Positions 7,508-21,700 of a stretch of DNA of 64,000 nucleotides are shown piece after piece. The notes under the pieces were generated by a model that was given only the letters and a program-made list of their open reading frames with translations, was not told where the DNA came from and did no database searches. The stretch is from the IMG/VR virus record IMGVR_UViG_3300017763_000002, positions 1-64,000 of that record, one strand, 5' to 3'. How positions within the stretch are numbered: the first letter of the stretch is position 1; every line of letters starts with the position of its first letter. The translations under genes and the position numbers were made by a program.

Positions 7508-7545
7508 TTTTATCTTTGTTATATTGTTTATCTTATTATGTATAC

Positions 7546-7574
7546 AACATACCACACCAATCGACAAAAGTCAA
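7546..7574 (-). promoter_or_regulatory. sigma70-type early promoter
   Basis: A-tracts, then TTGACT-17nt-TATGTT; A-rich leader to ATG 7507. Confidence 0.7.
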
Positions 7575-7613
7575 GTATTATTTTACTTTTTTTTACTTTT
7601 TTTTATTATTACC

Positions 7614-7690
7614 TAAGTCTTTGTGTATCCGGCACTTGTGGAAATTCGACAGGGCAAAAATCTTGCAAACTCTTGCCTATTAACGACTTA
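7614..7690. repeat. 77-bp double-dyad element, copy D
   Basis: TAAGTCTTTG-TGTAT-CCGGCACTTG, 27-bp core, CAAACTCTTG-CCTAT-TAACGACTTA; the terminal TTA is the stop of 7688-7912. Confidence 0.75.
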
Positions 7691-7912
7691 GAAGTCGTCC
7701 ATTAGTAGCTCGTCTAGTGCATAGGTGTCAAGCTCAGGGTCTTGGTAGTCTGCACCGTCGGGCGTGCTAGTAGTGCCGCATTCTACTAGATAGTTAGCTA
7801 GATCTTTATAGTGCACGAAACGCCTAGCAAGCTTGTATAAGCCTTCGTCGTTGCCTAGCCATAGGGCTACATTCCAAGTAACCCAGTTAGACCAACCATT
7901 ATACCCTTCCAT
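7688..7912 (-). CDS. conserved phage protein, 74 aa (YNGW.N..TWNVALW family)
   Basis: GYNGWSNWVTWNVALWLGNDEGLY is a recurrent phage motif. Confidence 0.8.
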   Translation of the reverse strand: MEGYNGWSNWVTWNVALWLGNDEGLYKLARRFVHYKDLANYLVECGTTSTPDGADYQDPELDTYALDELLMDDF

Positions 7913-8073
7913 TACTTCGAGGCGTTAACGGGGAAAAGACCATAACGACGAGAGCCGTCATTGTGTGCTATGCGAGAGCGTAGAAGTCGCTCGGCATCAC
8001 GCTGACGCATTGCTATGGATTCGACAACCCAAACGGCACCCGCTTGGTTGAGTATAGATTTAAGTATGTACAT
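7912..8073 (-). CDS. 53-aa hypothetical protein (not in ORF track)
   Basis: MYILKSILNQAGAVWVVESIAMRQRDAERLLRSRIAHNDGSRRYGLFPVNASK; TAATG coupling to the downstream gene. Confidence 0.55.
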   Translation of the reverse strand: MYILKSILNQAGAVWVVESIAMRQRDAERLLRSRIAHNDGSRRYGLFPVNASK

Positions 8074-8087
8074 TATTAGCCTTTCGT

Positions 8088-8384
8088 TTAGGATTCAAAG
8101 ATGTCACGCATTGCACCGCTTACGCAATTCATATCTGTTAGATTTTCGTCACTATCAAAGTCATCGTCTTCTTCTGCTTCGACTGCATCGAGAGATTCAA
8201 ACTCTCCTTCGATATCACGCTCGGATGCGTGTTGTATGCCATGCTCAAGAGTAAACTCCTCGTTTGCGATTTCTTCCTCAAGGTCATTGAGTAAGTCAGC
8301 AAACTTGCCTGTGAGTTTGTTGTTGTTCTCATTGGCGAGTTCAACGGCTTTAGCGATTAGAGAGATATTATTATCATTGTTCAT
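8088..8384 (-). CDS. very acidic hypothetical protein, 98 aa (start refined from 8420)
   Basis: D/E-rich (EAEEDDDFDSDE); the start fits the promoter at 8393-8420. Confidence 0.7.
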   Translation of the reverse strand: MNNDNNISLIAKAVELANENNNKLTGKFADLLNDLEEEIANEEFTLEHGIQHASERDIEGEFESLDAVEAEEDDDFDSDENLTDMNCVSGAMRDIFES

Positions 8385-8392
8385 AGTTATGT

Positions 8393-8420
8393 ATATTATA
8401 TTATATTGAAGTAATTGCAA
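8393..8420 (-). promoter_or_regulatory. sigma70-type early promoter (near-leaderless)
   Basis: TTGCAA-16nt-TAATAT; ATG 8384 is 8 nt downstream. Confidence 0.65.
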
Positions 8421-8433
8421 GAAAAAAGTGCGA

Positions 8434-8547
8434 TTATGCGAAAGTTTTTTTATGCTTTGCCTTGCGTGGAAGCATCTTATTCTTTAGCTTGTGAGGTCTT
8501 GCCTTAGTGAAGACCATCGGTATTCTAACTTTAATTTTCTTATTCAT
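8434..8547 (-). CDS. 37-aa very basic peptide (not in ORF track)
   Basis: MNKKIKVRIPMVFTKARPHKLKNKMLPRKAKHKKTFA; own leaderless promoter. Confidence 0.6.
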   Translation of the reverse strand: MNKKIKVRIPMVFTKARPHKLKNKMLPRKAKHKKTFA

Positions 8548-8553
8548 AGATAC

Positions 8554-8582
8554 AATCTATCAAACAAATGCCTAAAAGTCAA
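8554..8582 (-). promoter_or_regulatory. sigma70-type early promoter (leaderless)
   Basis: TTGACT-17nt-TAGATT; ATG 8547 is 6 nt downstream. Confidence 0.8.
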
Positions 8583-8613
8583 CAAAAACATTCAACTGTT
8601 TTACTGCACTATA

Positions 8614-8638
8614 CCCCCACCCCCGGTGACCCTACCCC
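8614..8638 (-). other. putative G-quadruplex motif at the early/late boundary
   Basis: The minus strand reads GGGG-TA-GGG-TCACC-GGGGG-T-GGGGG, four G-runs with short loops in an AT-rich genome. Confidence 0.6.
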
Positions 8639-8754
8639 TTTTGTGAATTAGAATCTCTAAACAGATCAGAAAATCCGGCGGGGGGTGGTATTTTTCAATA
8701 TCGAAAACAAAATTAAAATTATACAAATTAGCTTGGCCCAAAAAAATCCACGGG

Positions 8755-8759
8755 GTGTA
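8755..8759 (+). promoter_or_regulatory. GTGTA late-type promoter motif
   Basis: GTGTA-9nt-ATG 8769. Confidence 0.6.
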
Positions 8760-8768
8760 TTTACATAC

Positions 8769-9023
8769 ATGCCCGACGAACAAGACATGATATGGCTAAA
8801 AGGAATGCAATTAAAATTAAAAGGATGCGAGGCTAAAAACAGCGATATGAAATTTTTAATTAAATTAATGCAAGACGAATTAAACAAAACAAAACAATAC
8901 ATTCATTCAGAATGCCGCCGACCTGACTTTGAGTATTCAAAGCACGTTGACATGGCATTGTCGTGGACACCTAGAAAAAGAAAAAGAATAGTTACTCAAA
9001 TAAAAAATGAAATTAAAACGTAA
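8769..9023 (+). CDS. hypothetical protein, 84 aa (start refined from 8685)
   Basis: MPDEQDMIWLKG...; start placed by the GTGTA motif; overlaps the next gene. Confidence 0.55.
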   Translation: MPDEQDMIWLKGMQLKLKGCEAKNSDMKFLIKLMQDELNKTKQYIHSECRRPDFEYSKHVDMALSWTPRKRKRIVTQIKNEIKT

Positions 9024-9816
9024 AATATTGATTATGGGGTTGCCCGGTGCAGGTAAGACCTCTCTCGCTGAACTTTTAGTGCCTGCCTTAGGCGCTGTAT
9101 GGTTTAACGCTGACGCAATTCGTCAGGAAATACATAAAGATCTTGGATTTTCTGAGGAAGATAGAATAGAACACGCTCGTAGATTGGGAAAATTAAGTGA
9201 CTGGGCTGCCATGGGGGGTAACTTTGTGGTTTCAGATTTTTGCTGCCCAACAAAAGAAACTCGAGAAGTTTTTGAAGCTGATTTTACCATATGGGTGGAC
9301 AGGATTATGGAGGGCCGTTACGAAGATACAAACAAAATGTTTGAACGCCCTATGAATTACGACATTAGACTAACAGACGGCAGTCCAGAAGAATGGCTCG
9401 GAAAGGTTCTTAAAAAAATATACGAAACTGAAAAATGGGACAATCAAGCTCCGACAGCGCTTTTAATTGGAAGATACCAACCGTTTCACATTGGGCATAA
9501 AACGCTGGTTAATGAGGCTATTAAAAGAGTCGGTCAATGCTGTATTGCACTAAGAGATGTTGCAGGTACAGACGAAAGCAATCCTTATGATTTTGAAAAA
9601 GTTAAACTTGAAATCGAGAAAGCTTGCCTTGAGTTCGGAGATAAAATAAAAGTCGTTGAGCTTCCAAATATCACAGACGTATTTTATGGAAGGGGCGTAG
9701 GATATAATATCGAACAACTTGAACTTAGTAAAGAAATGCAGGATGTTTCAGCAACAAAGATTAGATCGGGACAAATTGGCCAAGACGGCAAACCTACTGG
9801 CAAGAGACCTGAGTAG
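9007..9816 (+). CDS. cysC: adenylylsulfate (APS) kinase fused to a HIGH-motif nucleotidyltransferase domain
   Basis: P-loop GLPGAGKT and DAIR...DLGFSEEDRIEHARR as in CysC; C-terminal IGRYQPFHIGH and VSATKIRS of the cytidylyltransferase/NMNAT-like fold. Confidence 0.85.
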   Translation: MKLKRKILIMGLPGAGKTSLAELLVPALGAVWFNADAIRQEIHKDLGFSEEDRIEHARRLGKLSDWAAMGGNFVVSDFCCPTKETREVFEADFTIWVDRIMEGRYEDTNKMFERPMNYDIRLTDGSPEEWLGKVLKKIYETEKWDNQAPTALLIGRYQPFHIGHKTLVNEAIKRVGQCCIALRDVAGTDESNPYDFEKVKLEIEKACLEFGDKIKVVELPNITDVFYGRGVGYNIEQLELSKEMQDVSATKIRSGQIGQDGKPTGKRPE

Positions 9817-9893
9817 TTTTGTCCCATTTTGGGCTGTAAGCCCTTTATTATTCATGTGTTTAATTGGCATAAAGATTGCAATACTATGTTTAT

Positions 9894-10265
9894 ATGAAAA
9901 ATTCACTAATAACTAACTTCTTGGGCGAGCCCAGCTTGCTCAGCGCGATGGATTCAATTATTGATTACAGTGTTGACTCCTATAAATATAGAACAACTCT
10001 AGAAAAAAAAGACAATGGGTATATCGTAACCGCTCAAGTTCCTGGAATGTCAAAAGAAGACATCTCTATTAAATTAGAAGATTCCGTGCTCAAAATAACT
10101 GGAGAAAAACAAGTTAATGAAAGCATGACTACATCTATTAATAAAGACTTCACTATAAGTAGTAGTATTAATACAAGCAAAATCGAAGCTAAGGTTGAAA
10201 ATGGTATACTTAACGTTTTTATTCCTCAAAAAGAAAATAAATCAAAAAAAATTCCAATTAATTGA
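9894..10265 (+). CDS. small heat shock protein (Hsp20/alpha-crystallin), start refined from 9876
   Basis: AQVPGMSKEDISIKLEDSVLKITGEK and IEAKVENGILNVFIP. Confidence 0.9.
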   Translation: MKNSLITNFLGEPSLLSAMDSIIDYSVDSYKYRTTLEKKDNGYIVTAQVPGMSKEDISIKLEDSVLKITGEKQVNESMTTSINKDFTISSSINTSKIEAKVENGILNVFIPQKENKSKKIPIN

Positions 10266-10398
10266 TCCAAGTATAGTTCTAGATCGTTATCTATCTCACT
10301 ATGCTATCTAATAAACAATGTTTGAATCTGGCCAAATTTATGGTTTCTGTAATTTTTACTGCAATCAGCTCAATGGTAACCTATTTGAATTCAATGGT

Positions 10399-11007
10399 TT
10401 AATCGTTTTTGTACATTAACGATTGATATTCAACCATAATTTCTCGATAACCATGCTTTTTTAGATAAGGAATACTGTAAGTACTCTTAGAATCTCCCTC
10501 TGGAGTGTGAACGTCGTCGTGAAGAATAAGCGATTCTTTAGAAAGTAAATCATTTTCTAAAGCGTACTTAACATCTTTCAAGTGTTCAAGGCAAGCTTCT
10601 TCTCCACTTTCTAGATGATCCATATATAACAAGTCAATCTGATTTGGTTTTGGAAGAGATTCAAGAAAAACTTCTGCTGTAGATTCATACAGAATAACAT
10701 TAGGATTATTTTCGCACATTTTTCTAGCAACAAATATTGCTTCAGGCAAAGGATCCACAGAATATATTGTGGCTTGAGGTAAATTGTCCGCAAAAACCTT
10801 AGTAAAGCATCCCGCGCCCCAGTCCCAAACTGAGGGATCTTCATCGTAATGCTCGATGTCGGTGGTAAATATTTGCTGTCTAAATGATCTCGTAGTCCCA
10901 AGTTCAACAATATTTAATTCCCCACGCGTATCCAATATTTCTTTGCATAATTCGAATGTCTTCTTAAATGTATTTCGTCTTCTTCCCAGAAACTCTTCGT
11001 ATTTCAT
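10399..11007 (-). CDS. class I SAM-dependent methyltransferase (Methyltransf_24-like)
   Basis: IVELGTTR, YSVDP, IDLLYMDH and LILHDD motifs. Confidence 0.7.
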   Translation of the reverse strand: MKYEEFLGRRRNTFKKTFELCKEILDTRGELNIVELGTTRSFRQQIFTTDIEHYDEDPSVWDWGAGCFTKVFADNLPQATIYSVDPLPEAIFVARKMCENNPNVILYESTAEVFLESLPKPNQIDLLYMDHLESGEEACLEHLKDVKYALENDLLSKESLILHDDVHTPEGDSKSTYSIPYLKKHGYREIMVEYQSLMYKND

Positions 11008-11009
11008 AA

Positions 11010-11591
11010 TTATTTTTTGTAGATTTGACCTATTCCTGTGTTTCTTGGGGTTTCCCAGGTTTCGCCATAAGGGTCACAAGCTTTTTTAACACCTGGGCAC
11101 TTATGAAAACCATAATCATGAGTCAATATCTTGCCTCCAGGAACTACTTTATCATAAAAATGATTTAAGCAAGCTTTAGTGGGTATATAATGATCTAAGT
11201 CTAACCATAAAACAGCAATATTATTTACGTTAACTGATTGTATTGTATTTTCATCTATAAACATTGGGTATGTTCGCGGCACTTTAATATTGTTTTTTGT
11301 AAAATTATCTATCCATTTATCCAGCCCTCCAGCGTTGAACTCTCCTGCAAAGCATGGGTTTTCACACATATCTTCTTCTGCTGGTGGCGCTAAACCTTCA
11401 AACGAATCAATAGCGTGGTATTCTCGTTCTGGAGAAGTTAAAGTCATTGACATTACATCTCCTCCTAAATATGTGCCAGCAATAACAACATTACCTTGAG
11501 GAGCGAAAGCAACAGTATTAATTAGATGATTGATTTCATATACAGTAAGAGCAGTATATTCTTTAATTTGATTATATATATTGTTTGTCAT
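11010..11591 (-). CDS. TylF/MycF-like sugar O-methyltransferase (start refined from 11624)
   Basis: GNVVIAGTYLGG, IDSFEGL, LWLDLDHYIPTK and PGGKILTHDYG motifs; ATGA overlap with the upstream gene. Confidence 0.8.
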   Translation of the reverse strand: MTNNIYNQIKEYTALTVYEINHLINTVAFAPQGNVVIAGTYLGGDVMSMTLTSPEREYHAIDSFEGLAPPAEEDMCENPCFAGEFNAGGLDKWIDNFTKNNIKVPRTYPMFIDENTIQSVNVNNIAVLWLDLDHYIPTKACLNHFYDKVVPGGKILTHDYGFHKCPGVKKACDPYGETWETPRNTGIGQIYKK

Positions 11592-12397
11592 AATTTTTCT
11601 ATAAAAATTCCTATTGAAGTGCATGTAAACCCTTCGAATGATAACTTTAGGTGTGGGTCTTGAGTATAAGGGGGTACATCTATGTATCCATCATAAACTA
11701 AATCGCCTGAAGAAAAATCCATTTCACAAGCTTTATATCCCATTTGATTTGCAGTGTTTATTAATCTTTCAATATCCTGGCGGCGGTATATACAGGTTGA
11801 TGGATGTTCTAAAGTTTCTTGATTTGATGAAACGTTGTACTCTGTTGTATGTACAGCTATACCTCCTTTTTTTAAAGTTTTCATGCTATTAAGTATAAAA
11901 TCTATACCTTTCTGTAATGATCCTAAATGCTCTAGACTACATGCACTCCAATTAAAGTCAAAACTATCATTAAATTCATCTTGTATATTATTCATATCTA
12001 TACATCTATATTGTACATAATTATAAAAAGTGTCTCTATCGCAGAACTTTGGCAGCCATTTCTCAAAGGAGCTCAATGAATCAGAGTGTTGATCTGTGGC
12101 TATCCACCCACTTTTCTCGGCGGCTTCTTTATCCTGATCACTAGCAACTATATCCACTCCCTCAGTAGCTAATGCAGGAACTAAATATTCTTCTCCACAT
12201 CCAAACCCCAACCCTTTCTTACCAGGCTTCAGCATTCCCTTTTGTTCTAATACATTATATATCCATATCATCTCCCATACTTTACGATGATAATATACTT
12301 CTTGATCAAACTTATTTCTATTTATTCTTACAGAAGATACTGAATCTAAATGTGACTGCTTACATAAACTACCAATTAAATCAATATTTTTATTCAT
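11588..12397 (-). CDS. class I SAM-dependent methyltransferase
   Basis: KGLGFGCGEE, VASD, SFDFNWSACSLEHLG and LKKGGIAVHTTEY motifs. Confidence 0.8.
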   Translation of the reverse strand: MNKNIDLIGSLCKQSHLDSVSSVRINRNKFDQEVYYHRKVWEMIWIYNVLEQKGMLKPGKKGLGFGCGEEYLVPALATEGVDIVASDQDKEAAEKSGWIATDQHSDSLSSFEKWLPKFCDRDTFYNYVQYRCIDMNNIQDEFNDSFDFNWSACSLEHLGSLQKGIDFILNSMKTLKKGGIAVHTTEYNVSSNQETLEHPSTCIYRRQDIERLINTANQMGYKACEMDFSSGDLVYDGYIDVPPYTQDPHLKLSFEGFTCTSIGIFIEKL

Positions 12398-12570
12398 TGC
12401 TTATTATAATAACTTTCGGGGCTCTGTCGTAGACTGTAAAAACGTTGTTTTACATACTTCAAACCCCCACAACTTACTTATTTTATTCTGCCTTTTATGC
12501 ATATAGTATAATAACATTTTTTTAACAAAACAGCTAATATAATTTTTTTTATTTTGCTATAATGCCCTTC

Positions 12571-12644
12571 AGGCGATTCCGGCGTCAGCCGATACTATTA
12601 TAATTATTTATAAATTAATATTATTTATTGAATTGATATCGCCT
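12571..12644 (+). ncRNA. candidate small structured RNA
   Basis: TG-extended TATAAT at 12555-12563; 7-bp terminal stem AGGCGAT/ATCGCCT; internal CGGC-GTCA-GCCG hairpin; no ORF. Confidence 0.3.
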
Positions 12645-12665
12645 CAAACTGATAGGCATATAATT

Positions 12666-13394
12666 TTATAACATTCGCTTTATGACGTCCTCATTATCTA
12701 TTAAAATATAGTCTTGGGCTTTATTTCTTTCTGCAGTATTTGGTAGAAATTGTCCAAGAACTTCCAAAAACCTTCCGTTCCATTCTGCTCCCATGTTTTT
12801 CTTAGCCAAAAATTCCATATGATTTTTTACATCATGAATACTGTAACCCATGAAATGAATCAAGAAGTCCCCAGCTTTAAATTCAGATGGGTATTGATTG
12901 AACATTTTCCTAGGCCACGCCTCAAAGGGGTCTTCTTCTTTTTGAAGCAAGTTGATTAAAGGCGTTTGATCTCCGCCGTTCACCCTCCATTCTGGATCTA
13001 AGGTTTTAGGTAAAGAATCCCACCACTTCCAGAGAAGGTCGATTCCTCGGTATGAATTCTTCCAAATTAAAACTCCAGCATTTAGAGGCCAACTTCCTAC
13101 ATCATCAGCATAGTATACGTCTTTTGATAAGTCTTTTCTAATTATATCTTCAAGCAAAATATCATCATTTACAAAACAAGCATCTAAATCCATAAACACC
13201 ACGTAATCATATTTGTAAATATGTTTTAAAACAATGTATGGCTTTTGATTTGTTGGATTTACATCTGGAAAAGCAGATTCTTCTGCGATGTGATCGTATC
13301 CATGCTTCTCGCAATATAAAGAATTCATGTGCATGCACCCTATCATATTATTAGCGAAAGCTTTATCTCCTAATTGAACTACAGCAATTTTCAT
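12666..13394 (-). CDS. GT34/MNN10-like glycosyltransferase (start refined from 13487)
   Basis: YDYVVFMDLDA (DxD), LNAGVLIW, GDQT and FLIHFMG motifs. Confidence 0.8.
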   Translation of the reverse strand: MKIAVVQLGDKAFANNMIGCMHMNSLYCEKHGYDHIAEESAFPDVNPTNQKPYIVLKHIYKYDYVVFMDLDACFVNDDILLEDIIRKDLSKDVYYADDVGSWPLNAGVLIWKNSYRGIDLLWKWWDSLPKTLDPEWRVNGGDQTPLINLLQKEEDPFEAWPRKMFNQYPSEFKAGDFLIHFMGYSIHDVKNHMEFLAKKNMGAEWNGRFLEVLGQFLPNTAERNKAQDYILIDNEDVIKRML

Positions 13395-13404
13395 TACTAT
13401 AATA

Positions 13405-13428
13405 TACACATGCAAAATTAATAGTGTA
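13405..13428. promoter_or_regulatory. divergent pair of GTGTA motifs
   Basis: Minus strand GTGTA(13409-13405)-10nt-ATG 13394; plus strand GTGTA(13424-13428)-11nt-ATG 13440. Confidence 0.65.
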
Positions 13429-13439
13429 AAATATATTAT

Positions 13440-14495
13440 ATGCAAGTACCGTCTATTGATATACTTACTGTGGTTTGCGGTAAGCAAGCAGTCTTAAGTA
13501 TGTGGGCAAAATTTTTATTTACCGCAGGAAATTCTGTGCTTAATGTAAATCTTAAAATCGTAGACAATAGTAACAGCGAAATATTTAGAAAAACTTTAAT
13601 TTCCACCCTTAAGCTCAATAATGTATATAGCGCATTTAATGACGTGCAAATTATAGAATGTCACGCAGGGGTGCCTTCATTATTCGAAACGGCTAGAGAG
13701 AGCGCTAACGCTCAAAAGAAGCATCAATCTACTGCAGACGCATTTACTGCAGGGTTCAGACAATGCAATGCAGATTATATATTTACTGTAGACGATGATG
13801 TAGTCTGCCCATCTCACATTGTTAGCTCTTTTGCGGAAAAGATGTCAGCAGACCAATCAATAGGTTGCGTTACAGGGTATTATTTTACAAATCCGAATTG
13901 GGCGCATAATCCAGAAAAAGCCAACCAAAGAGAAACCTCTGTAGCTAAAGATATGGATAACCGCGCGCTCTCGGGAGTATATGAAATATGGGGAGAACCA
14001 AACTGTAAAATTAGGCATTGTGGTACTGGCTGCGCCCTCTGGAGGGCCAGCGATGTCAAGCAATGTCTACCTCTTAGAGTAGAGTCTCCTAGCGATTCAG
14101 ATTTATTTTTTTTAGGCCCAGATGTTTGTCTTTGTGATGATATAAATAAATTAGGTAAATCAATTATTTTAGATACAAAAATGATATGTCAACATTTAGA
14201 TCATAACGGCAATGAGGTTGGATTAGGTGTAAAAAACTTTTTTGAAGAATATCAAAAGCAAACACAACGTATGAGTCAAGCAGAAATAGCATATTATCTA
14301 CAAGTTAAATTAAATAATTTAAATTCTTTAATGCTAGAATCTATAACGGAATTAATTGAGGGCAAACCGACATCAATAGCACTACAGCATAAAATTAAGA
14401 CCGACCTAGAAAATCTTTTTGAGAAAAGTCAGGATCCAAATAGGCAAAAAATAATCAAAAATATTATCAAATACATATTAATCACCGATAATTAA
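13440..14495 (+). CDS. GT-A fold (GT2-like) glycosyltransferase
   Basis: IVDNS, YIFTVDDDVV, GTGCALWR and DVCLC..INKLGKSIILDTKMICQHL motifs. Confidence 0.75.
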   Translation: MQVPSIDILTVVCGKQAVLSMWAKFLFTAGNSVLNVNLKIVDNSNSEIFRKTLISTLKLNNVYSAFNDVQIIECHAGVPSLFETARESANAQKKHQSTADAFTAGFRQCNADYIFTVDDDVVCPSHIVSSFAEKMSADQSIGCVTGYYFTNPNWAHNPEKANQRETSVAKDMDNRALSGVYEIWGEPNCKIRHCGTGCALWRASDVKQCLPLRVESPSDSDLFFLGPDVCLCDDINKLGKSIILDTKMICQHLDHNGNEVGLGVKNFFEEYQKQTQRMSQAEIAYYLQVKLNNLNSLMLESITELIEGKPTSIALQHKIKTDLENLFEKSQDPNRQKIIKNIIKYILITDN

Positions 14496-14496
14496 A

Positions 14497-15309
14497 ATGA
14501 GACTTCCAGACTTTATTATTCCAGGGTTTCAAAAATGTGGAACTACAGCTCTAAGGCAAAATTTAAATCAACATCCCGAAATATATATGCCTAAGTGCGA
14601 TGACATACTCTGCAATACCGACCAAGAAATGAATTTTTTTGTAAAACACGCAAACTTTCACAAAATGCCGGCGGACGAAGCCTTGCTTTGGTATAAATCT
14701 CGATTCAAAACCGACGCTAAGTTTTGCGGAGAAAAATCTCCTAATTATACTCTAATTCCTGAATTTTCTGCGGCAAGAATGCACGAAATAGTACCTAATA
14801 TAAAGTTAATATTTAGTTTCAGAAACCCAATAGATAGATGTTATTCTGCATACAATCACTACTCCCAAGCTTTTAACGATAAACAAGACTGGGTTGATAA
14901 CGTGGATTGGAGTCCAGATAAAAGTTTTTTATGGAATTTAGAAAATAAAAAAGGCATAAAAGAAAATACAAATTACGCTGAAACTCTAAAAACCTATGCA
15001 AAGTTTTTTAGTTCGGATAAAACGCTGCTTATTATCCAAGAAAGATTGCAAAAACCAGCGTATGAAATAAAGTCGGACTATAAAAACAATGAGATAATAA
15101 ATGAAGGTCAAGAAGAGTACGATAGGATATTTAATTTTCTTGGAGCGTCAAGTTTTAAAATTAAAAATAGAATCGTCCACGCCCGCTCAAAAAAGCAACT
15201 ATCTTCAATAGAGCGTGAGGCCGCTTACCGAATTTTATCGAAAGAGTTTGAGGCATTTTTTGAGATATACGGCCAGACTGTTCCGGAATGGAAGCAAGAC
15301 TTAAATTAA
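14497..15309 (+). CDS. PAPS-dependent sulfotransferase (heparan sulfate 3-O-sulfotransferase-like)
   Basis: LPDFIIPGFQKCGTTAL (5'-PSB loop), GEKSPNY and FRNPIDRCYSAYNH (3'-PB motif). Confidence 0.9.
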   Translation: MRLPDFIIPGFQKCGTTALRQNLNQHPEIYMPKCDDILCNTDQEMNFFVKHANFHKMPADEALLWYKSRFKTDAKFCGEKSPNYTLIPEFSAARMHEIVPNIKLIFSFRNPIDRCYSAYNHYSQAFNDKQDWVDNVDWSPDKSFLWNLENKKGIKENTNYAETLKTYAKFFSSDKTLLIIQERLQKPAYEIKSDYKNNEIINEGQEEYDRIFNFLGASSFKIKNRIVHARSKKQLSSIEREAAYRILSKEFEAFFEIYGQTVPEWKQDLN

Positions 15310-16254
15310 TTTATAGATCTCTGAATTTTTAATTTGTTTAAATAAATTACCCCTGTGTACGGCGAGCCTCCTTCTTTCGATCAAGTATCTGTGCGCTCTA
15401 GCAATTATATAATCTCTCTTGATGAGTTTATTGGCCTCTTGCATGCTTGAATAATATAATGGATAGTTATGCCCTAAATATTCGCACGCCGACTCGCTTT
15501 TATTAATTAATATAGGAGTACAGCAATCTATACAATCTAGTATAGTATTATTAGCAACACAATCAAATAAACATAAAAAGAATATATTATTCTCGTATAA
15601 TTTATAATAATTTTCATTACTTAATTTATTTATTTTATTTATATTATCTAGCGTGCCTTTATTAAATTGATTATACATTGATTCTGTTACCTCGTTCCAT
15701 GGTATAATATTTTTTGTATAGTTTGTTGGAGTCTCTAGCTCTAGTAGGCCGGCGGGATTTCGGAGGTGCATGCCTGGAGAGTATATATTTCTATTTTTAG
15801 ATTTATTAAAAGATTTTAAATCAAAAACTAATGGTAAATATTTTATTGGATGGTATATAGTTTCACAGGGCACATTAATACCTTTCGATTCAAAAAACGT
15901 TTTAAATTTATTAGCTTCATATTGAGACATAAAATATAAACCCAAACATTGGTTTTGTATAATTTCTAGAACGCAATCAGGATAAGGTTGTATTTTATTT
16001 ATGTATAAATGAGCATCAAATGGATCGTGAATAATTGCAATAAATGGTTCTACAGGAATGCTTTTGAGGGCTTCGTCGATGTGTTTAAGATTATTCTGAG
16101 TAAACCAACCAAAATGCGACTCAAAGAAAGTTAAAAGATTGACGTTGCCCCTGTAAAGCTTACTCTGCGCCTCAAGATATTTACAGGCCAAGTCCCAGCC
16201 TTCGTGAATCATTTCATGGTTTGGGGATATAATGTGTTTAAATTTCACACCCAA
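15301..16254 (-). CDS. putative GT-B-like glycosyltransferase
   Basis: C-terminal FLCLFDCVANNTILDCIDCCTPILIN...EYLGHNYPLYY resembles GT-B C-lobes seen in large-virus glyco clusters; cluster context. Confidence 0.5.
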   Translation of the reverse strand: MGVKFKHIISPNHEMIHEGWDLACKYLEAQSKLYRGNVNLLTFFESHFGWFTQNNLKHIDEALKSIPVEPFIAIIHDPFDAHLYINKIQPYPDCVLEIIQNQCLGLYFMSQYEANKFKTFFESKGINVPCETIYHPIKYLPLVFDLKSFNKSKNRNIYSPGMHLRNPAGLLELETPTNYTKNIIPWNEVTESMYNQFNKGTLDNINKINKLSNENYYKLYENNIFFLCLFDCVANNTILDCIDCCTPILINKSESACEYLGHNYPLYYSSMQEANKLIKRDYIIARAHRYLIERRRLAVHRGNLFKQIKNSEIYKLI

Positions 16255-17063
16255 GTCCTTGATGATTCATGAGTAAAATAAGAGTCTGGCAGTAAAGATT
16301 CTACGAGATATTGCTTAGGAATGTGTTGCCATGGCCCGTCAGTTGTATTGCTTTTTTCGAACAAACTTGATACGTTAAATTTATTAAACAAAACCAACTC
16401 CCCCTCGTTTTTTCCTGGCAATGATGTTGGGTTAGTATAAAAATAAGGTAACACGCACAATGAATGATTACTGCTCGCCTGAATTTGACTAGCAACTGCA
16501 GCGCTAATTAGTTGAGGTCCAGTGCTCCAAAATACTTTAGACTGTTTTTGCATATCGCGCTTACATTTTAATTCAAGAGCTCTTTGCTGCATCATGTATG
16601 CCGCAAGAATCCAAAATCTTGAGTTAGGCTCTGAGGCCATAATGGCATTGTATATGGAGTTTTGTAGATTATAAGCATTTGGGTACTCTTCGAATAAGAG
16701 CACCTGTCGATTATGCGAGCAATTTAACAGAAACTGACAATCATTATGCTCAATTTGGTCTATCATTTCGTCCATAGGCTTCAGCGACAACATGTCTAGA
16801 TCTAAGTAAACTCCGCCGTATTTGTGCATATAAAACACTCTGGACGCGTCTGCACGCTGTATTGGCCACTCGTACGACTCGTAAGTATCTAAAAACCAAG
16901 GGTAATAGTCTGCGATTAAATTAAAGTTATCTTCGTCGGTCCAGTACTTATATTCCCATTCTGGATGGTTTTTTAATAGCACATTTCTGATGCTACTCTC
17001 TTTGGCTGGCAAGTCTTTTGCCTTGCTTTTCCAGCTTTGATGGATTATTTTAGGGATTTTCAT
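16245..17063 (-). CDS. GT32 (Och1/Sur1-like) DxD glycosyltransferase
   Basis: IPKIIHQSWKS, HPEWEYKYWTDED and RADASRVFYMHKYGGVYLDLD motifs. Confidence 0.9.
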   Translation of the reverse strand: MKIPKIIHQSWKSKAKDLPAKESSIRNVLLKNHPEWEYKYWTDEDNFNLIADYYPWFLDTYESYEWPIQRADASRVFYMHKYGGVYLDLDMLSLKPMDEMIDQIEHNDCQFLLNCSHNRQVLLFEEYPNAYNLQNSIYNAIMASEPNSRFWILAAYMMQQRALELKCKRDMQKQSKVFWSTGPQLISAAVASQIQASSNHSLCVLPYFYTNPTSLPGKNEGELVLFNKFNVSSLFEKSNTTDGPWQHIPKQYLVESLLPDSYFTHESSRTWV

Positions 17064-17069
17064 AGCTCC

Positions 17070-17090
17070 TGTGTAAATCTATATTACACA
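17070..17090. promoter_or_regulatory. overlapping face-to-face GTGTA motifs (palindrome TGTGTAA-N7-TTACACA)
   Basis: Sits in the 31-bp gap between divergent starts 17063(-) and 17095(+). Confidence 0.6.
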
Positions 17091-17094
17091 AGAC

Positions 17095-18150
17095 ATGAGA
17101 ATTTTTATTACTTCCGATTTATCAAAATCACCCTGGAAAGATTCTTCAGTTCAAGCCTCGATTTTTCTATATGAATCTATACAATCTACTGGAGCTGAGG
17201 TGTTTATGCTAAACGTTGCTAGTTCAGAGGCTTTTACTGAAAGAAAAAATAAATTTTATAATATGAGTCAGATTGGTGACCCAAATTTTCCCTCGATAGA
17301 CGTTTTAATTATATGCGGCGCAAAAGTTTCTTTAACCCAACAAGAGTCTATCAAAAGCAGGTTTGGCGCTAAAATTATACTTTATCAACATTACTTTGTT
17401 TCTGCAATACATCAGGAAAATTTTGCCCACAACAAGCCGCTCCCTTGCTCGGAGCCTTTGGTTGACGAAATTTGGGTCCCCGAGCATCATAGCAAAAGCA
17501 TGCAGTATGTTAGTTTATTCTATAACCCGAAAGCATCAATTAAGTCGGTTCCTTATTTGTGGGATTCAAGTTTTATAAATTCTGAAAACAAAAGGGGTAG
17601 AATAAATTTTGAAAAAGAAGAAAAAAAGTCTATTGTGATATTTGAGGATAATAAATATTCTTTCAAAACTTGCTTGATGCCGATTATGATCTGCGAAAAA
17701 GCTAATCAATTAAATCCAAAAGCCATTGACGCAGTGAGCGCAATGAATACGTCTAATGCAAAAAAGAATCTATCTTTCATGAACTTTTCTAGCGATTTAA
17801 CTTTAAATAAACAAAACAAATTACATCTGAGCGGCGCATGGAACTTTAGTAGTGCTATATCTAAAATTGGTAAATATATATTATCATATCAAGAGAATAA
17901 TCATTTAAATTATTTATTTTTGGAAGCTTTGTATTTAGGGCTACCTCTTATACATAATTCCGAATACATTAAGGAGTATGGTTATTACTTTAATAGTATG
18001 GATTTAAATTGGGCTGCGAATCAAGTTTTAAATGCTCTCTCTAATCACGAAGAAAATTTAGAAGTTTATAGAGAACAGAATAAATTTCTAATCAAAAGCT
18101 ATCACCCTAAAAATCATAAAAATAAAGCCTTTTTTAATTCTTGCTTTTAA
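17095..18150 (+). CDS. DUF2827 family protein (putative glycosyltransferase-like)
   Basis: VPYLWDSSFI, KTCLMPIMICE and QENNHLNYLFLEALYLGLPLIHNSEYIKEYGYYF motifs. Confidence 0.75.
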   Translation: MRIFITSDLSKSPWKDSSVQASIFLYESIQSTGAEVFMLNVASSEAFTERKNKFYNMSQIGDPNFPSIDVLIICGAKVSLTQQESIKSRFGAKIILYQHYFVSAIHQENFAHNKPLPCSEPLVDEIWVPEHHSKSMQYVSLFYNPKASIKSVPYLWDSSFINSENKRGRINFEKEEKKSIVIFEDNKYSFKTCLMPIMICEKANQLNPKAIDAVSAMNTSNAKKNLSFMNFSSDLTLNKQNKLHLSGAWNFSSAISKIGKYILSYQENNHLNYLFLEALYLGLPLIHNSEYIKEYGYYFNSMDLNWAANQVLNALSNHEENLEVYREQNKFLIKSYHPKNHKNKAFFNSCF

Positions 18151-18189
18151 CTACTAGTGTTTGGTGTATATAATATGTAAGGTTAAAGG

Positions 18190-18726
18190 ATGAAAATTTT
18201 AGGCAAAAACGGTTATGTTAGAGATGTTACGGACGCTGATGTTTTAGAGCTTTCGGCTCATCCACGAGACGTAGACCAAAGGCATTCTCAGTATTTAGGC
18301 TGGGAAAATTACCACGAGCACATAATTAATACTTTTCATTCTTCTAAGCGGAGTTTAGCCTTTTGTTTCAGCGATGGAACTTTAGTCGGATGTACAGGAG
18401 TGCACGACTCCCCACACGCCCGAGTCGGAGGCGTCTGGGCATTAGGAACTAAAAACTCTTTAGATATTCTAGACTTCAAAGGCAGCTTAAAAAAAAGTTA
18501 TGGCAATTTAAAGTCTATTTTAGGTGTTTATGAATTTATGAAAATATCCAGGGAGCATTTCGATTGGCTTTTCGGAGAAGATTTTGATGTTTTGTTAAAC
18601 ATTGTTGAAAAAAATAACAAATTAGGACAGAGATGGTTGCGTTTTTTGGGAGCAGAAATCACGCCTAAAGACGACCGCTTTTGTCAAGTAACATTTTATA
18701 AAAATGGGCGGCGGAGTACATATTGA
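18190..18726 (+). CDS. GNAT-fold protein similar to T7 gp13/DUF2833
   Basis: LLNIVEKNNKLGQRWLRFLGAEI matches the N.V...N....RWL..LG.F pattern; GTGTA at 18164. Confidence 0.55.
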   Translation: MKILGKNGYVRDVTDADVLELSAHPRDVDQRHSQYLGWENYHEHIINTFHSSKRSLAFCFSDGTLVGCTGVHDSPHARVGGVWALGTKNSLDILDFKGSLKKSYGNLKSILGVYEFMKISREHFDWLFGEDFDVLLNIVEKNNKLGQRWLRFLGAEITPKDDRFCQVTFYKNGRRSTY

Positions 18727-21700
18727 TTTTAATCTAGATTTCTTATCTGCAGATCCTACATCCAACTCTGCCAAAAGAACATTATTCGGACACTCCAGGG
18801 CTGCCATGCCAGGAGCAATGCCGACATGGTACGGCCGTTTCAGGCAGTATGCGGTTTACGAAGTTGGGCATTTAGTTTTGCACGCGGATGACGCTGATGA
18901 TTTCTTGGCAAGAAATGAGAGGTCAGCGCCTTCTTTATCTAATTTATATGTATGCGTAAATACTAATAGAGCCGGAGATTTTCCGCCTCCTTCCTCAACC
19001 TCATGGAGATCATTGGCGGATTTGTCTAATGATTATGATACCGGAGCAAGATCAGTTCCTAGGGCTACTTTTTTAACTTCAGGAAGAATGTCTGATAATG
19101 AAATATGTTTAAATTTATTTGAATTTATTGATTTAAATTTTGTAATTTGTAATTCTACTTTCACCCCACTAAATAGCGGTTTAGACCCTATTGCTATTAA
19201 GCCTAGGGTTGGAGCCTCATTTGGAGGAGGGGTTACAAGGACTAGAAGAGAAGTGGATTTAAATTCATCGCAAGGCGGAAACTTAGAAAGGTTTACCGTG
19301 GATTATCCAGAGTATGCTATTTCGGGCACAGGGCAGATTCCCTTGCCTAGTAGAAAATTTGGTTTTGCGGCAACTTCTTTAAATGCACAAATGGGTTCAG
19401 AAATTGAAGCTCTTAATCCAACGAATGACCCGCTAGATCCAGATTTGACTGCAAATTCTTTTGACTCTTCTGTGGTTTATGAAGTTGGAAGCGTAGTGAA
19501 TTATTTTCCAATAGCTGATAATCAAAGCTTAGAGTCTGAAGTTTTTGATACGACTAACCACCCAAAGCTATCTGTGTGTATTAAAAATCTAGAATCTCCA
19601 GCAAGAGATCAAAACGGAACTTATGATACAAGCAAGCTCCCCTGGAATCAAAATTCGACTTACTGGAGGTCATATACATCTGCGGCGAACCGACCAAATT
19701 CATCATTAAGTTCTGTTTATGAATATTTAGTTAATAAAAAAAATAGATTTCCTGCATTTACAGTTAATCCTGACCCGGTAAAAAATCTATCTAACCAAAC
19801 AGTTATCAGGAATAAATCTAGAATTCGTATGAATGATTTTGGTGGCACCTCAAATATTTATGGGCACTTTTTTGTGCATTGGGCTACCGCATTACAACCT
19901 TATAGCAGGAGTAAATGCAGAACCTGGTACTCTGGGGCGTCATCGCAATCTGGCCCACATCAAGATGGGCAATATGATATTTTTATATATACTAAAAATT
20001 TGAAAAAAGACCACGGCGGCCAACCCAGGTTAGCTGTAACTTTCGGAAAAACTACTGCTATTAAATTTTTATCTGTTAGCGGAGTCTCTACATTTTCTAC
20101 AGGCACTATAAGTTCAAATACAATAAATAAATATTTAAAAGATGATAATTTTAACTCGTCAATGATTCAAGAGGTTAGTTCTGAGGCAGATATAATGCAT
20201 TATCAATATAGTAATCTCGTTCCCTCTTACTACATGGGAAGAGGTTACGTTCATGCAAGAAGAAGGGGCGGAGTTCATCCTGGCTCTAGCAAGGGCGATC
20301 GAAATTTAGGTAAATTTATATTGTTTATCGAAGATTTATTGTCTCGCCAAAGAATTGAAATGGTAACTCCTCAAATATTTTCTAATGGGAATCCCAGGCT
20401 TGGTCTTCATGGCCACTCAATTCCAACTCAAGACTGGGGAGAAACTGGGGCCACAAGAAATTATCAATATACAAAAGAAATTGTAGATGGCGGGGGTTTA
20501 ACAGATTTATTATCCACAAAAACAACTGCCACGACAGCGGCACAACCAATGCATTACTTAATAGTAGGCAACGCTTTAAGCGCAACAGACCAAGTAGCGA
20601 ATCAAGGAATAAGCTTTCAAAATCGTTTCGTAGATAGGGCTTTCAGGCCAATTATGCTGAGGACTGATGCGTTAAGCGAAGAAAGATTTTTTCATATACT
20701 TGGCTTGATGCAAACTGGATTCGTCGGGGTTGACGCCGAACTTTTTAAAAATATTACGGACCAAAATATCGACAACTTATCTGGTATAGAGAACAAAATA
20801 TGGATGGATCTTGGGGAGACGTTCCATGGCTCCCAAGGGAACCCTTTATTTAAATCAATCGCCTCTAAAATAGGCTCTTTTAAAGAAAACACACTTACGA
20901 ATCTAAACGATTTAGCTAGCTGGAGTTCATCTTCACAGTACTCTCCGCAGCAAATCACTAAAATTACCCATTCAGATTATTGGACTGCAGGAGGTGACCA
21001 GGGGAGTGCTAATTTTGTCGGACCTTGGTATTATGATGTGCAATATAATTCTGGGAGCGTTGTTTATTTGTGGCAAGACGGACAAAAAACTTATTATACC
21101 GCAGCAGCGAGTTCTAAGTCTGTTTCTCCAAAAGAATTTTTTACTTTTTACAGGGCGTCAGTGGCAAACTCAAATAAAACTCCTATCTACAATTCCAGTA
21201 TCTGGAAAAGAGTGTCAATACCTAAGGGTAATATCGGTTTCCTTAAAGGTTTTGTTTCGACTATAAACCCTTATACTTCATTGCAAGTTTTAGCTAATTC
21301 TAACCTATGGCCTCCAAGCGGAAGGCGCGCATCTAAAATTGGATTTGGCTGGAAGAGGACTTTATCTGAAGAGGGAATATTAAATCAAATCACAGAAAGC
21401 AATCAAGAGTCATATTTATCAAGCTGGACTGAAGGCGCAGAATACCAAGCGGGAGATATTATTACCGTGCAATCTGGTCCAATCGTCGCCCTTGCTCCAG
21501 ACGGAGAATACTATACTTACGAACAGTGGGTGTCTCGTTTTAATTTAAGCTCCCAAGAAGAAGAGGAAGTTTCTTTGCTGTTTTCAGAAGCAGAGGCAGT
21601 TAACCCGCTTTATGCTTTTAAGTGCTTAAAAAATACGTCTGAGGCGGATGTCAACGACCCTAAATCTTATGTAGGATTAATTCCTGGTTTTATTCCAAAT

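Follow-up and report, generated by a model that had tools for sequence, protein, structure and literature searches.

The window analysed here is a stretch of 64,000 nucleotides from IMG/VR virus record IMGVR_UViG_3300017763_000002, the genome of an uncultured marine phage of about 205 kb, and the island of interest spans positions 9007-18150. It begins with a gene on the plus strand (9007-9816), termed K_NT, whose product matches Pfam APS_kinase (4.9e-12, residues 7-88 only) and CTP_transf_like, with further matches in NCBIfam and to PHROG 10255. The N-terminal part (residues 1 to about 145) is an APS-kinase-fold P-loop kinase, and it is fused to an NMNAT/NadM-type nucleotidyltransferase (about residues 150-255; GRYQPFHIGH ... 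SATKIR). A terminator-like hairpin followed by a T-run lies just after the gene (9831..9853, plus strand), although the number of such sites in the region is not above chance and this assignment is weak. Next is an Hsp20 small heat-shock protein (9876-10265, plus strand; Pfam HSP20, 1.7e-14).

Three methyltransferase genes follow on the minus strand, two of them firmly assigned. The first (10399-11007) is a probable class-I SAM methyltransferase, with only weak matches to Methyltransf_25 (1.8e-3, below the cut-off) and NanM-like proteins, and a match to PHROG 24975 at 1.3e-12. The second (11010-11624) is a TylF-type O-methyltransferase (3.5e-11), whose start is probably the ATG at 11591, as relatives have gene calls of 192-193 residues. 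The third (11588-12397) scores above the gathering score for Methyltransf_11 and is of the Methyltransf_11/23 type.

The remainder of the island encodes five glycosyltransferase-like proteins and one sulfotransferase. A GT34/DUF273-like glycosyltransferase with the DxD motif (DLDA) occupies 12666-13487 on the minus strand; its true start is probably the ATG at 13394, in keeping with gene calls of 241-253 residues in relatives, and this removes the only hydrophobic N-terminus. A GT2-like glycosyltransferase (13440-14495, plus strand; Glycos_transf_2, 6.7e-7; VDDDV) has a stop codon that abuts the start codon of the sulfotransferase gene (14497-15309, plus strand; Sulfotransfer_3/_1). A protein without any Pfam match (15301-16254, minus strand; 15301-16248 in a second delimitation) has a predicted GT-B fold, and may be a glycosyltransferase or a pyruvyl-transferase-like enzyme: its AlphaFold model (pLDDT 74.5) matches SenB, BshA, PimA and SdgB in the PDB at 1e-7 in a Foldseek search, giant-virus matches reach TMq 0.75 at 4e-19, and the protein atlas gave the same lead. 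A GT32-like glycosyltransferase (16245-17063, minus strand; Gly_transf_sug, 1e-18, DXD sugar-binding region) and a DUF2827 protein (17095-18150, plus strand; 4.8e-55), a cytoplasmic putative glycosyltransferase, complete the set. No protein of the island has a hydrophobic segment typical of a signal peptide or membrane anchor, as judged by a hydropathy scan only.

The first-pass annotation had placed the cluster directly against a gene for a 5,895-residue protein. We find instead that a gene of 178 codons (18190-18726, plus strand) lies between the two and overlaps the start of the giant gene (18704-36391, plus strand) by 23 nt. The small protein matches PHROG 308, annotated as internal virion protein, at 1.9e-12, and the protein atlas pointed to Phage_T7_Gp13 and the GNAT fold; we refer to it as gp13-like. 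The giant protein is non-repetitive, has only weak matches to CBM_5_12, RCC1_2 and DUF4214, and matches nothing in the PDB or in PHROGs. Only six homologues (5,875-6,511 residues) were found among 5.8 billion proteins; the family is collinear along its length, and its two ends are the most conserved parts. The giant protein has no detectable similarity to any known structural protein, and its proposed place in the virion rests on the neighbouring gp13-like gene alone.

The genes of the island share a promoter-like GTGTA-TATAAT motif with the gp13-like and giant genes. GTGTA occurs 36 times in the 64 kb, against 65-137 expected, and ten copies lie within 40 nt upstream of a start codon on the same strand. 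A divergent pair lies between the GT34 and GT2 genes (13405-13428), a face-to-face pair lies in the 31-nt gap between the GT32 and DUF2827 genes (17071-17089), and the element GTGTATATAAT (18164-18174, plus strand) lies upstream of the gp13-like and giant genes. The motif is conserved at the same intergenic positions in four diverged relatives, the related loci that we term L091, L003, L090 and L176: the first three keep the divergent pair and L176 keeps one copy of it, all four keep the face-to-face pair, and the element at 18164 is identical in L091, L003 and L090. The motif is thus real, whereas the late timing that the first-pass annotation ascribed to it remains a supposition. Contigs identical to parts of the GT2, DUF2827 and gp13-like genes occur in seawater RNA libraries, although these could be carried-over DNA.

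The cluster is far beyond chance, being kept in synteny in at least four further distinct genomes at 44-95% protein identity. In L087, a further related locus, and in L091, L003, L090 and L176, the order GT34 ... GT32, DUF2827, gp13-like gene, giant gene is maintained, while the middle genes (sulfotransferase, GT2 and methyltransferases) are swapped. Hsp20 is present in all five and sits at the edge of the island in every variant, and GT34 is likewise conserved in all variants. By contrast, the probable methyltransferase at 10399-11007 is found among relatives only in L087 and L091, and the Methyltransf_11 protein only in L087, so the island is in flux. Every genome found with the island has the gp13-like gene and the gene for the protein of about 5,900 residues directly downstream, and these two genes occur only in genomes that carry the island. 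We stress, however, that all of these genomes belong to one small clade, so that the co-occurrence may be a single inherited event. The gp13-like protein is 63-91% conserved in all variants; when rates of divergence were compared, the glycosyltransferases and the giant protein were found to diverge similarly (about 45-60% identity), while K_NT and the gp13-like protein stay at 79-91%.

The sulfotransferase is a PAPS-dependent enzyme of the heparan-sulfate NST/3-OST type and its motifs are intact: K13-GTT, the Glu of GEKSP and RNPxxRxxS are conserved, K13, T16, R109, S117 and H121 are invariant, and E79 is kept in 11 of 13 relatives. Its best PDB sequence matches are 3rnl, NDST1 and the 3-OSTs. 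Similarity among sulfotransferases is concentrated in the PAPS-binding motifs, so the acceptor cannot be read from the sequence, and it remains possible, though we consider it unlikely, that sulfate is placed directly on tyrosine, serine or threonine of the giant or another protein, or on a small molecule or glycolipid, with the glycosyltransferases and methyltransferases serving a separate product, the sulfotransferase using host PAPS, and K_NT being an NAD-related enzyme unrelated to sulfation. TylF, a family of macrolide-sugar methyltransferases, would be consistent with a small-molecule product. However, the nearest solved relatives of the sulfotransferase are carbohydrate sulfotransferases, its catalytic Glu is of that type, no tyrosylprotein sulfotransferase appears at E<=1, the gene is translationally abutted to the GT2 gene, and there are no scaffold-forming biosynthetic genes for a natural product.

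K_NT looked unrelated to sulfation at first. The profile of its nucleotidyltransferase domain matches NadM/NMNAT at 5.9e-9 and has no detectable similarity to ATP sulfurylase, the DGDN motif of APS kinases reads NADA, and the full-length APS-kinase model scores 46 bits against a cut-off of 138.7. The protein is also present in many phages with no recognisable sulfotransferase, including 56-kb Casjensviridae, in which its gene overlaps a NADAR gene. On the other hand, a model built from 29 homologues has APS kinases as its top 46 PDB matches in Foldseek, and the APS-binding positions R39, F48, R53 and R59 are invariant in the 29 homologues. Across 79 related phage loci the commonest neighbour family of K_NT is Sulfotransfer_2, directly adjacent in 9 loci and within 10 kb in 17 of 48 K_NT lineages defined at 95% identity, and four of the five GenBank phage records with a Sulfotransfer_2-like match also match K_NT. 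This recurrent adjacency is hard to explain by NAD metabolism, and a role in PAPS supply is therefore likely.

A second possibility is that the enzymes decorate a modified base, for example a hydroxymethyl-pyrimidine, in the phage DNA to block host nucleases. In Ralstonia phage RSL1 a single operon combines a ThyS-family gene, a sulfotransferase, three glycosyltransferases annotated as beta-glucosyl-HMC-alpha-glucosyltransferase, a nucleotidyltransferase, an NDP-sugar pyrophosphorylase and a K-domain kinase, which looks like a DNA-modification operon. In Stenotrophomonas phage DLP_6 the sulfotransferase lies in the replication module, a nucleoside 2-deoxyribosyltransferase-like gene is a frequent neighbour of K_NT in relatives, and a 2013 computational paper is reported to have predicted nucleotide sulfation in phages. 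Against this, we find no ThyS, 5mYOX/TET or C5-methyltransferase in the 64-kb window and no ThyS homologue in any of the 79 K_NT loci, whereas intact DNA-glycosylation pathways usually cluster with those enzymes (bioRxiv 10.1101/2023.12.21.572611). The glycosyltransferases of the window are not homologous to those of RSL1, T4 beta-GT is not among the top 50 fold matches of the GT-B protein, relatives add sugar-nucleotide enzymes such as UDP-galactopyranose mutase, and the island is fixed next to a virion-protein operon rather than a replication module. Although DNA as the acceptor is not excluded, we regard this reading as unlikely.

A third possibility, which we also consider unlikely, is that the enzymes act at the inner face of the membrane on lipid-linked intermediates of LPS, capsule or exopolysaccharide, changing the surface of the infected cell, for example for superinfection exclusion or to trap competing phages. 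The GT2, GT32, GT34 and GT-B (GT4-like) families and TylF-type methyltransferases are typical of polysaccharide clusters, one relative of the sulfotransferase (locus L089) sits in a large RmlA/RmlD/RgpF/pyruvyl-transferase cluster, and PVC bacteria make and degrade sulfated polysaccharides. Nevertheless, we find no priming phosphoglycosyltransferase, flippase, polymerase, ligase or ABC exporter, and no membrane-associated enzyme, in the island or in related loci (Wzx-, Wzy- and ABC-like proteins were absent from the island and from the 79 related loci), and no integrase or lysogeny genes were seen in the window. Nor does this reading explain the fixed synteny and the promoter-like motif shared with the gp13-giant operon.

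Taken together, the observation made in the first-pass annotation, a set of glycan-modifying enzymes in about 9 kb, is confirmed, with almost every enzyme that it named present, one methyltransferase being only probable. Its interpretation, that the phage builds a sulfated and methylated glycan on its virion or host surface, is partly supported. The inventory, the apparent solubility of the enzymes and the tight link to the giant gene hold, a PVC host is plausible (the phage's DUF1501 is closest to Verrucomicrobiota homologues, at about 50% identity), the APS-kinase fusion is plausibly part of a sulfation route, and the parallel drawn with giant viruses holds for the GT-B protein. The description as a complete-looking pathway is overstated, since the window contains no ATP sulfurylase homologue, leaving the sulfate-adenylylation step unproven, and no sugar-nucleotide genes, flippase, polymerase or other export machinery, nor is there a known acceptor. 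The term giant virion protein goes beyond the evidence given above, and the proposed roles in mimicry, shielding and exclusion are speculation.

We tentatively hypothesize, while preferring this to each of the alternatives above, that the region is an accessory glycan-tailoring island of a phage whose host is probably a member of Verrucomicrobiota or another PVC phylum. In this view, the five soluble glycosyltransferase-like enzymes would build a short glycan in the cytoplasm of the infected cell from host sugar nucleotides, two or three SAM methyltransferases would O-methylate it, and the sulfotransferase would sulfate it with PAPS, the supply of which K_NT most likely raises, at minimum by converting host APS to PAPS. 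The acceptor would most likely be a phage protein made from the adjacent operon, the prime candidate being the protein of about 5,900 residues, which in this view is co-transcribed with the gp13-like gene. There is no direct evidence for the acceptor, but it is in keeping with this proposal that DUF2827 genes are tied to giant adhesins in bacteria, that a distant tandem pair of DUF2827 genes plus glycosyltransferases lies between proteins of 1,529 and more than 1,700 residues, and that in a relative, L005, a glycosyltransferase-sulfotransferase island lies 3 kb from a 1,911-residue Phage-tail_3 protein. Our analysis establishes the gene content, the catalytic motifs, the synteny, the shared promoter motif and the neighbourhood link between K_NT and sulfotransferases, whereas we infer the synthesis of PAPS by K_NT, a glycan rather than some other acceptor of sulfate, a protein as the acceptor of that glycan, and a place for the giant protein in the virion. 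A sulfated glycan on a phage protein is not known to have been described for any phage, although virus-encoded glycosylation is itself established.

Mycobacteriophage virion O-glycosylation of the Che8/Corndog/Myrna type (Freeman et al. 2023, cited in PMC12619734) similarly involves phage-encoded soluble glycosyltransferases, sometimes with methyltransferases, that lie next to structural genes and are thought to modify virion proteins in the cytoplasm. The present island, for which no biochemical evidence exists, has five glycosyltransferase-like genes, three methyltransferases, a sulfotransferase and a putative PAPS supplier, and its candidate acceptor is a protein of 5,900 residues rather than the capsid or tail-tube C-terminus. 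In the Mimiviridae fibril and chlorovirus capsid systems, virus-encoded clusters of several glycosyltransferases with methyltransferases also work independently of host secretion, and the best viral fold matches of the GT-B protein are Klosneuvirus and CroV proteins; here, however, the host is prokaryotic, nearly all other genes in the island differ, and no sulfotransferase is known to be part of the characterised giant-virus pathways. In bacteria, DUF2827 genes are constantly adjacent to giant trimeric autotransporter adhesins (bioRxiv 10.64898/2026.01.22.700529), which again places a cytoplasmic putative glycosyltransferase, its function only predicted, immediately beside the gene for a very large surface protein, but the giant phage protein has no signal peptide, beta-barrel or repeats and is not an autotransporter.

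K_NT shares its kinase fold, the P-loop and the Phe and Arg positions that bind APS with bacterial CysC APS kinase and the bifunctional PAPS synthases of metazoa (PAPSS1/2), and has the same domain order as PAPSS, with the kinase first and the nucleotidyltransferase second. It differs in its length (269 residues against about 620), its shortened lid, its NADA in place of DGDN, its NMNAT/NadM-like second domain and its failure to reach the curated APS-kinase cut-off. Finally, in the RSL1 operon (ORF230-238) a kinase of the same K-domain family is linked to a sulfotransferase, glycosyltransferases and nucleotidyltransferases in a jumbo phage, but RSL1 has a ThyS-family gene beside the operon, a Sulfotransfer_2-type sulfotransferase, unrelated glycosyltransferases and a kinase with a different C-terminal domain, and no DUF2827, gp13-like or giant gene at that site.

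The enzymes listed in the first-pass annotation are all present, and its observation is confirmed. The best defined of them is the putative PAPS-dependent sulfotransferase (ST, 14497-15309), which scores above the curated cut-offs of both PF13469 (43.7 bits against 27) and PF00685 (39 bits against 22), and whose nearest solved relatives by sequence are a bacterial sulfotransferase (3rnl), heparan-sulfate NDST1 and the 3-O-sulfotransferases. The 5'-phosphosulfate-binding loop (K-x-G-T-T) is present as FQKCGTT and the 3'-phosphate-binding motif (R-x-P-x-x-R-x-x-S) as FRNPIDRCYS, and K13, T16, R109, R114 and S117 are invariant in 13 relatives. In carbohydrate sulfotransferases the Glu of the E-K-S/T-x-x-Y motif is the catalytic base; here GEKSPNY aligns with FEKSANY of NDST1, and the Glu is kept in 11 of the 13 relatives. 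The glycosyltransferase-like proteins likewise exceed their profile cut-offs: GT34 (PF05637, 38.4 bits against 23), GT2 (PF00535, 29.8 against 23.3), GT32 (PF04488, 68.3 against 23) and DUF2827 (PF10933, 187 against 25; E-value 5e-55), with DLDA, DDDV and DLDM seen in the translations as DxD motifs of the GT34-, GT2- and GT32-like proteins. A 317-residue protein without a Pfam family (15301-16248) is predicted by AlphaFold to adopt the two-Rossmann GT-B fold (pTM 0.76). The model matches SenB, BshA, PimA and SdgB in the PDB at 1e-7, although a sequence profile searched against the PDB gave nothing significant, and its best viral matches are Klosneuvirus and CroV proteins (TMq 0.75) that are annotated as pyruvyl-transferase-like, so that it may be a glycosyltransferase or a pyruvyl-transferase-like enzyme. 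Two methyltransferases are firm (TylF and Methyltransf_11, the latter termed MT11) and one is weak (MT1). A hydropathy scan finds no membrane segment in the island once the GT34 start is placed at the ATG at 13394, as in the gene calls of relatives.

The layout of the genes suggests compact transcription units. On the minus strand, GT34, MT11, TylF and MT1 follow one another from about 13409, and GT32 and the GT-B gene from about 17089; on the plus strand, a unit from about 13424 holds GT2 and then ST, with abutting stop and start codons, DUF2827 forms a unit from 17071, and a gp13-like gene followed by the giant gene, overlapping by 23 nt, form a unit from 18164. Each unit starts 14-26 nt after a GTGTA followed by an AT-rich, TATAAT-like stretch. 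GTGTA is depleted overall in the window, with 36 copies against 65-137 expected, yet ten copies lie within 40 nt upstream of a start codon on the same strand. The motifs (13405-13428, 17071-17089 and 18164-18174 in this region) are kept at the same intergenic positions in the relatives L091, L003, L090 and L176, although the flanking sequence has diverged, which is good evidence for a shared promoter element. Further instances, again 14-26 nt upstream of start codons, lie at 37356, 38093, 40133, 46405 and 59901-59905; the motif precedes the PhoH gene, the S8 protease gene, a GAF-domain gene, the gene after the terminase (46425) and the DUF1501 gene. The phage encodes its own sigma factor (41100-41909), which might read this motif. 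A scan for sigma-70 and terminator consensus sequences did no better than on shuffled sequence, and no tRNA genes or Rfam families were found. Contigs identical to parts of the GT2, DUF2827 and gp13-like genes occur in seawater RNA libraries, one of them rRNA-depleted metatranscriptomic and one oligo-dT; without a control for DNA carry-over, this is merely compatible with transcription.

The window is the first 64 kb of the IMG/VR contig IMGVR_UViG_3300017763_000002 (204,906 bp) and is phage DNA; it carries a large terminase (44523-46391), members of the GP88 and L5-gp82 families, PhoH, an S8 protease, a sigma factor, a DnaE-type polymerase and ClpB. The S8 subtilase (38107-39246, plus strand) has a C-terminal proline-rich repeat and a strongly hydrophobic tail segment. 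A NUDIX hydrolase, a PD-(D/E)XK nuclease and a Kyanoviridae Gp96-family protein are encoded on the minus strand (61945-63406 and 6707-7015), and the stretch 4146-9007 holds mostly small ORFs with no matches. There is no close cultured relative: tblastn returned no match for the ST or for the putative capsid protein, and the terminase and DnaE matched only distantly. The 'moraphage' paper (PMC12619734) could not be tied to this lineage. The first-pass annotation suggested a PVC host, and this is supported, by inference only, by a DUF1501 gene and a PSCyt2/PSD1 gene (58621-61948, minus strand), a pair typical of Planctomycetota and Verrucomicrobiota; the closest cellular DUF1501 homologues, at about 50% identity, are in Verrucomicrobiota, followed by Planctomycetota. 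DUF1501 also neighbours K_NT, the kinase-nucleotidyltransferase fusion of the island, in nine related phage loci.

We found the island in further genomes. L087, from an NCBI metagenome assembly, has the same gene set at about 88-98% identity to the window, and L088, an ENA contig, carries identical ST and giant proteins. L091, a Tara scaffold of 191,709 bp, is 64-96% identical and lacks MT11. L003/L175, an IMG/VR contig of 126,880 bp, retains ST, with about 46-55% identity for the enzymes. L090, a scaffold of 147,749 bp (DUF2827 61% identical), has no ST and lacks K_NT at its usual place, and L176, a scaffold of 18,098 bp (DUF2827 44% identical), has no ST. A constant frame is kept, consisting of Hsp20, GT34, the GT-B gene, GT32, DUF2827, the gp13-like gene and the giant gene, whereas the middle is swapped. 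ST is present in the window, L087, L091 and L003; in L090 an unrelated 259-residue protein takes its place, and in L176 a GT34/GT-B fusion occupies that region. MT1 and MT11 come and go even between genomes that are 90% identical. In L003 (11268-12020, minus strand) and L176 (467-1219, minus strand) both are replaced by a conserved 250-residue protein, 81% identical between the two, with a P-loop-like GERNSGT motif; we considered this protein as a second sulfotransferase but rejected the idea, as it found no support in Pfam, the PDB or profile-profile comparison. The glycosyltransferases and the giant protein diverge in parallel (45-60% identity), while K_NT and the gp13-like protein stay at 79-91%, a pattern typical of host-interaction functions.

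The giant gene is preceded by a 178-residue gene (18190-18726) that matches PHROG 308, 'internal virion protein', at 1.9e-12, but Pfam PF11090 only at an E-value of 0.15; a protein atlas also relates it to T7 gp13. In IMG/VR this gene occurs only in the two contigs that carry the island. The giant protein has only six homologues among 5.8 billion proteins, all of them 5,875-6,511 residues long and collinear, with the first 750 and last 145 residues being the most conserved. It has weak CBM5/12, RCC1 and DUF4214 matches, and the attempts to identify it gave no PHROG or PDB match, no internal repeats, an uninformative protein-atlas result and no shorter homologues in relatives. The only evidence for its description as a giant virion protein in the first-pass annotation is this neighbouring gp13-like gene. 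A 2026 preprint provides independent support for the notion that DUF2827 serves giant proteins, since the DUF2827 proteins described there are cytoplasmic putative glycosyltransferases constantly adjacent to trimeric autotransporter adhesins. In L092 and L093, two distant loci, tandem DUF2827 genes lie with GT34, a GT25/GT32 fusion and a GT47/RXYLT1/GT34 fusion protein, flanked by unannotated proteins of 1,529 residues (717 in L093) upstream and more than 1,600-1,700 downstream, and in the related locus L005 a glycosyltransferase-sulfotransferase island lies 3 kb from a 1,911-residue Phage-tail_3 protein. The phage encodes both a full-length ClpB disaggregase (51332-53806, minus strand) and an Hsp20 (9876-10265, plus strand), the latter always at the edge of the island, and the two might serve folding of the 5,900-residue protein.

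The kinase domain of K_NT contains a P-loop (GLPGAGKT) and is predicted to have the APS-kinase fold: the modelled domain matches APS kinases over the whole fold, and its top 46 Foldseek matches in the PDB are all APS kinases (TMt 0.54-0.78). By sequence, however, it aligns with APS kinases only over residues 7-88; TIGR00455 scores 46 bits, well below the curated equivalog cut-off of 138.7, with only residues 7-89 aligned. The DGDN(x)R substrate and Mg loop is not conserved and reads NADAIR, of which N34, A35, D36 and R39 are conserved family-wide. The positions aligned with the R of DGDNIR, the F of GFS and two R of DREENVRR in PAPSS1, residues that bind APS, are invariant in 29 homologues. 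The second, NT domain is NadM/NMNAT-like (5.9e-9 in a profile search); no ATP sulfurylase appears at E<=1, and only the generic HxGH and ISxTxxR nucleotidyltransferase motifs are shared.

K_NT is widespread, with at least 141 matching IMG/VR contigs, and we first took it for a core gene unrelated to sulfation, because a tblastn and jackhmmer search with the ST of the window found that ST type only in L003 among the 79 other K_NT loci. This reading was wrong at the superfamily level. Clustering of all ORFs within 4 kb of K_NT, combined with Pfam, showed that the commonest neighbour family is Sulfotransfer_2; an HMM of that family finds it in about 27 of 79 loci, in up to five copies, directly adjacent in nine loci, and within 10 kb in 17 of 48 lineages at 95% identity and 6 of 14 at 80%. 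Among 50,697 GenBank phage records, a Sulfotransfer_2-like match occurs in only five, and four of those five are among the 19 records that match K_NT. Other recurrent neighbours are an NAD-dependent epimerase/dehydratase, UDP-galactopyranose mutase, GT2 and RCC1/Ig-like proteins. In the IMG/VR loci L005-L013, L021, L024, L041-L044 and L051-L055, one to five Sulfotransfer_2 genes next to K_NT are often accompanied by these and by GT92 and GT32 genes, so that sulfation islands seem widespread in this phage group. Within the island clade, L090, without ST, also lacks K_NT at its usual place. On the other hand, in the 56-kb Casjensviridae phages represented by L082 and L083 (Xylella phage Bacata and Stenotrophomonas phage Bhz60), K_NT overlaps an upstream NADAR-domain gene and sits near MazG and DNA methyltransferase genes, with no detectable sulfotransferase, and it may there have a second, NAD- or ADP-ribose-related role; such a NADAR neighbour is absent from all the IMG/VR loci. 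From these observations, we infer that the kinase domain supplies PAPS. Should the NT domain adenylylate sulfate, K_NT would be a minimal PAPS synthase with the metazoan domain order.

In L084 (a 577-kb contig) and L085 (a 102-kb contig), which look like huge phages, relatives of the ST at 35% identity sit among many small unknown ORFs beside a polyprenyl synthase, a peptidyl-prolyl isomerase and a tryptophan halogenase, and are not in a glycan cluster. In L089 (ENA MIZU16-1 scaffold_19, 190,317 bp, which may be viral or cellular), a 20-kb cluster holds eight sulfotransferase genes with RmlA, RmlD, RgpF, GT32-like, pyruvyl-transferase and GT2 genes. In Ralstonia phage RSL1 (L179, NC_010811.2 163104-171498), a single operon holds a ThyS-family gene, a sulfotransferase, three glycosyltransferases annotated as HMC-glucosyltransferases, a nucleotidyltransferase, an NDP-sugar pyrophosphorylase and a K-domain kinase, making it a candidate system for sulfated DNA hypermodification in a cultured phage. 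Because of this operon, DNA hypermodification must be kept as an alternative explanation of the island. Against it, Pfam searches of the 64-kb window, which is only part of the genome, found no ThyS-type hydroxymethylase, 5mYOX/TET or C5-methyltransferase; none occurs in any K_NT locus, and no homologue of the RSL1 ThyS-family protein was found in the window or in the K_NT loci. In addition, the glycosyltransferases are unrelated to those of RSL1, the island sits beside the putative virion-protein operon, and DNA-glycosylation pathways are generally clustered with their base-modifying enzymes (Pyle et al. 2024, preprint). Remodelling of the host envelope, another possibility, lacks any membrane machinery: no multi-pass membrane protein is encoded in the island, no priming transferase, flippase, polymerase or exporter was found there or in related loci, and of 1,574 ORFs in the related loci nine have three or more hydrophobic segments, none of which matches a transporter family. 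Direct sulfation of protein, or a small-molecule product, cannot be excluded from sequence.

The interpretation offered in the first-pass annotation is partly supported. Its description of a complete-looking pathway is overstated, as there is no ATP sulfurylase homologue, no sugar-nucleotide synthesis in this window (although relatives have some), no priming transferase, flippase, polymerase or exporter, and no defined acceptor. We tentatively favour, at somewhat less than even confidence, the hypothesis that the island directs cytoplasmic assembly of a methylated, sulfated glycan on a phage protein, with the giant protein as the prime candidate. We stress that the enzyme families and their motifs, the conserved gene order, the shared promoter-like element and the association of K_NT with sulfotransferases rest on the analysis itself, whereas transfer of sulfate to a sugar, synthesis of PAPS by K_NT, attachment of a glycan to a virion protein and the presence of the giant protein in the virion are inferred. 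A bolder reading, which we consider unlikely although the evidence does not rule it out, is that many aquatic and some soil phages carry a portable sulfation module. Its core would be a 27-30-kDa 'mini PAPS synthase', in which an NMNAT-type adenylyltransferase domain has taken over sulfate adenylylation and feeds a fused APS-kinase-fold domain, paired with one to five sulfotransferases. In this phage clade the module would be used to sulfate a glycan on a 5,900-residue virion protein, which would give the first sulfated phage particle and a new minimal type of PAPS synthase.

The island is conserved, rapidly diversifying and apparently self-contained, and in it a sulfotransferase with all catalytic motifs is linked to glycosyltransferases and to a giant phage protein. 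The wider result may matter more, since the recurrence of a small kinase-nucleotidyltransferase fusion next to sulfotransferases suggests that phages bring their own activated-sulfate supply, and we regard this link across many phages as the most testable new lead. If confirmed, it would add sulfated glycoconjugates to the repertoire of phage surface or genome chemistry, a possible way for phages of polysaccharide-degrading PVC bacteria to interact with sulfated-glycan-binding hosts, and a compact PAPS-forming enzyme of practical interest. We found no paper in the library searched that characterises sulfation by a phage. Virus-encoded glycosylation is itself known from mycobacteriophages and giant viruses; what is new here is its combination, in a single island, with a sulfotransferase gene and a phage-borne gene for the inferred supply of PAPS.
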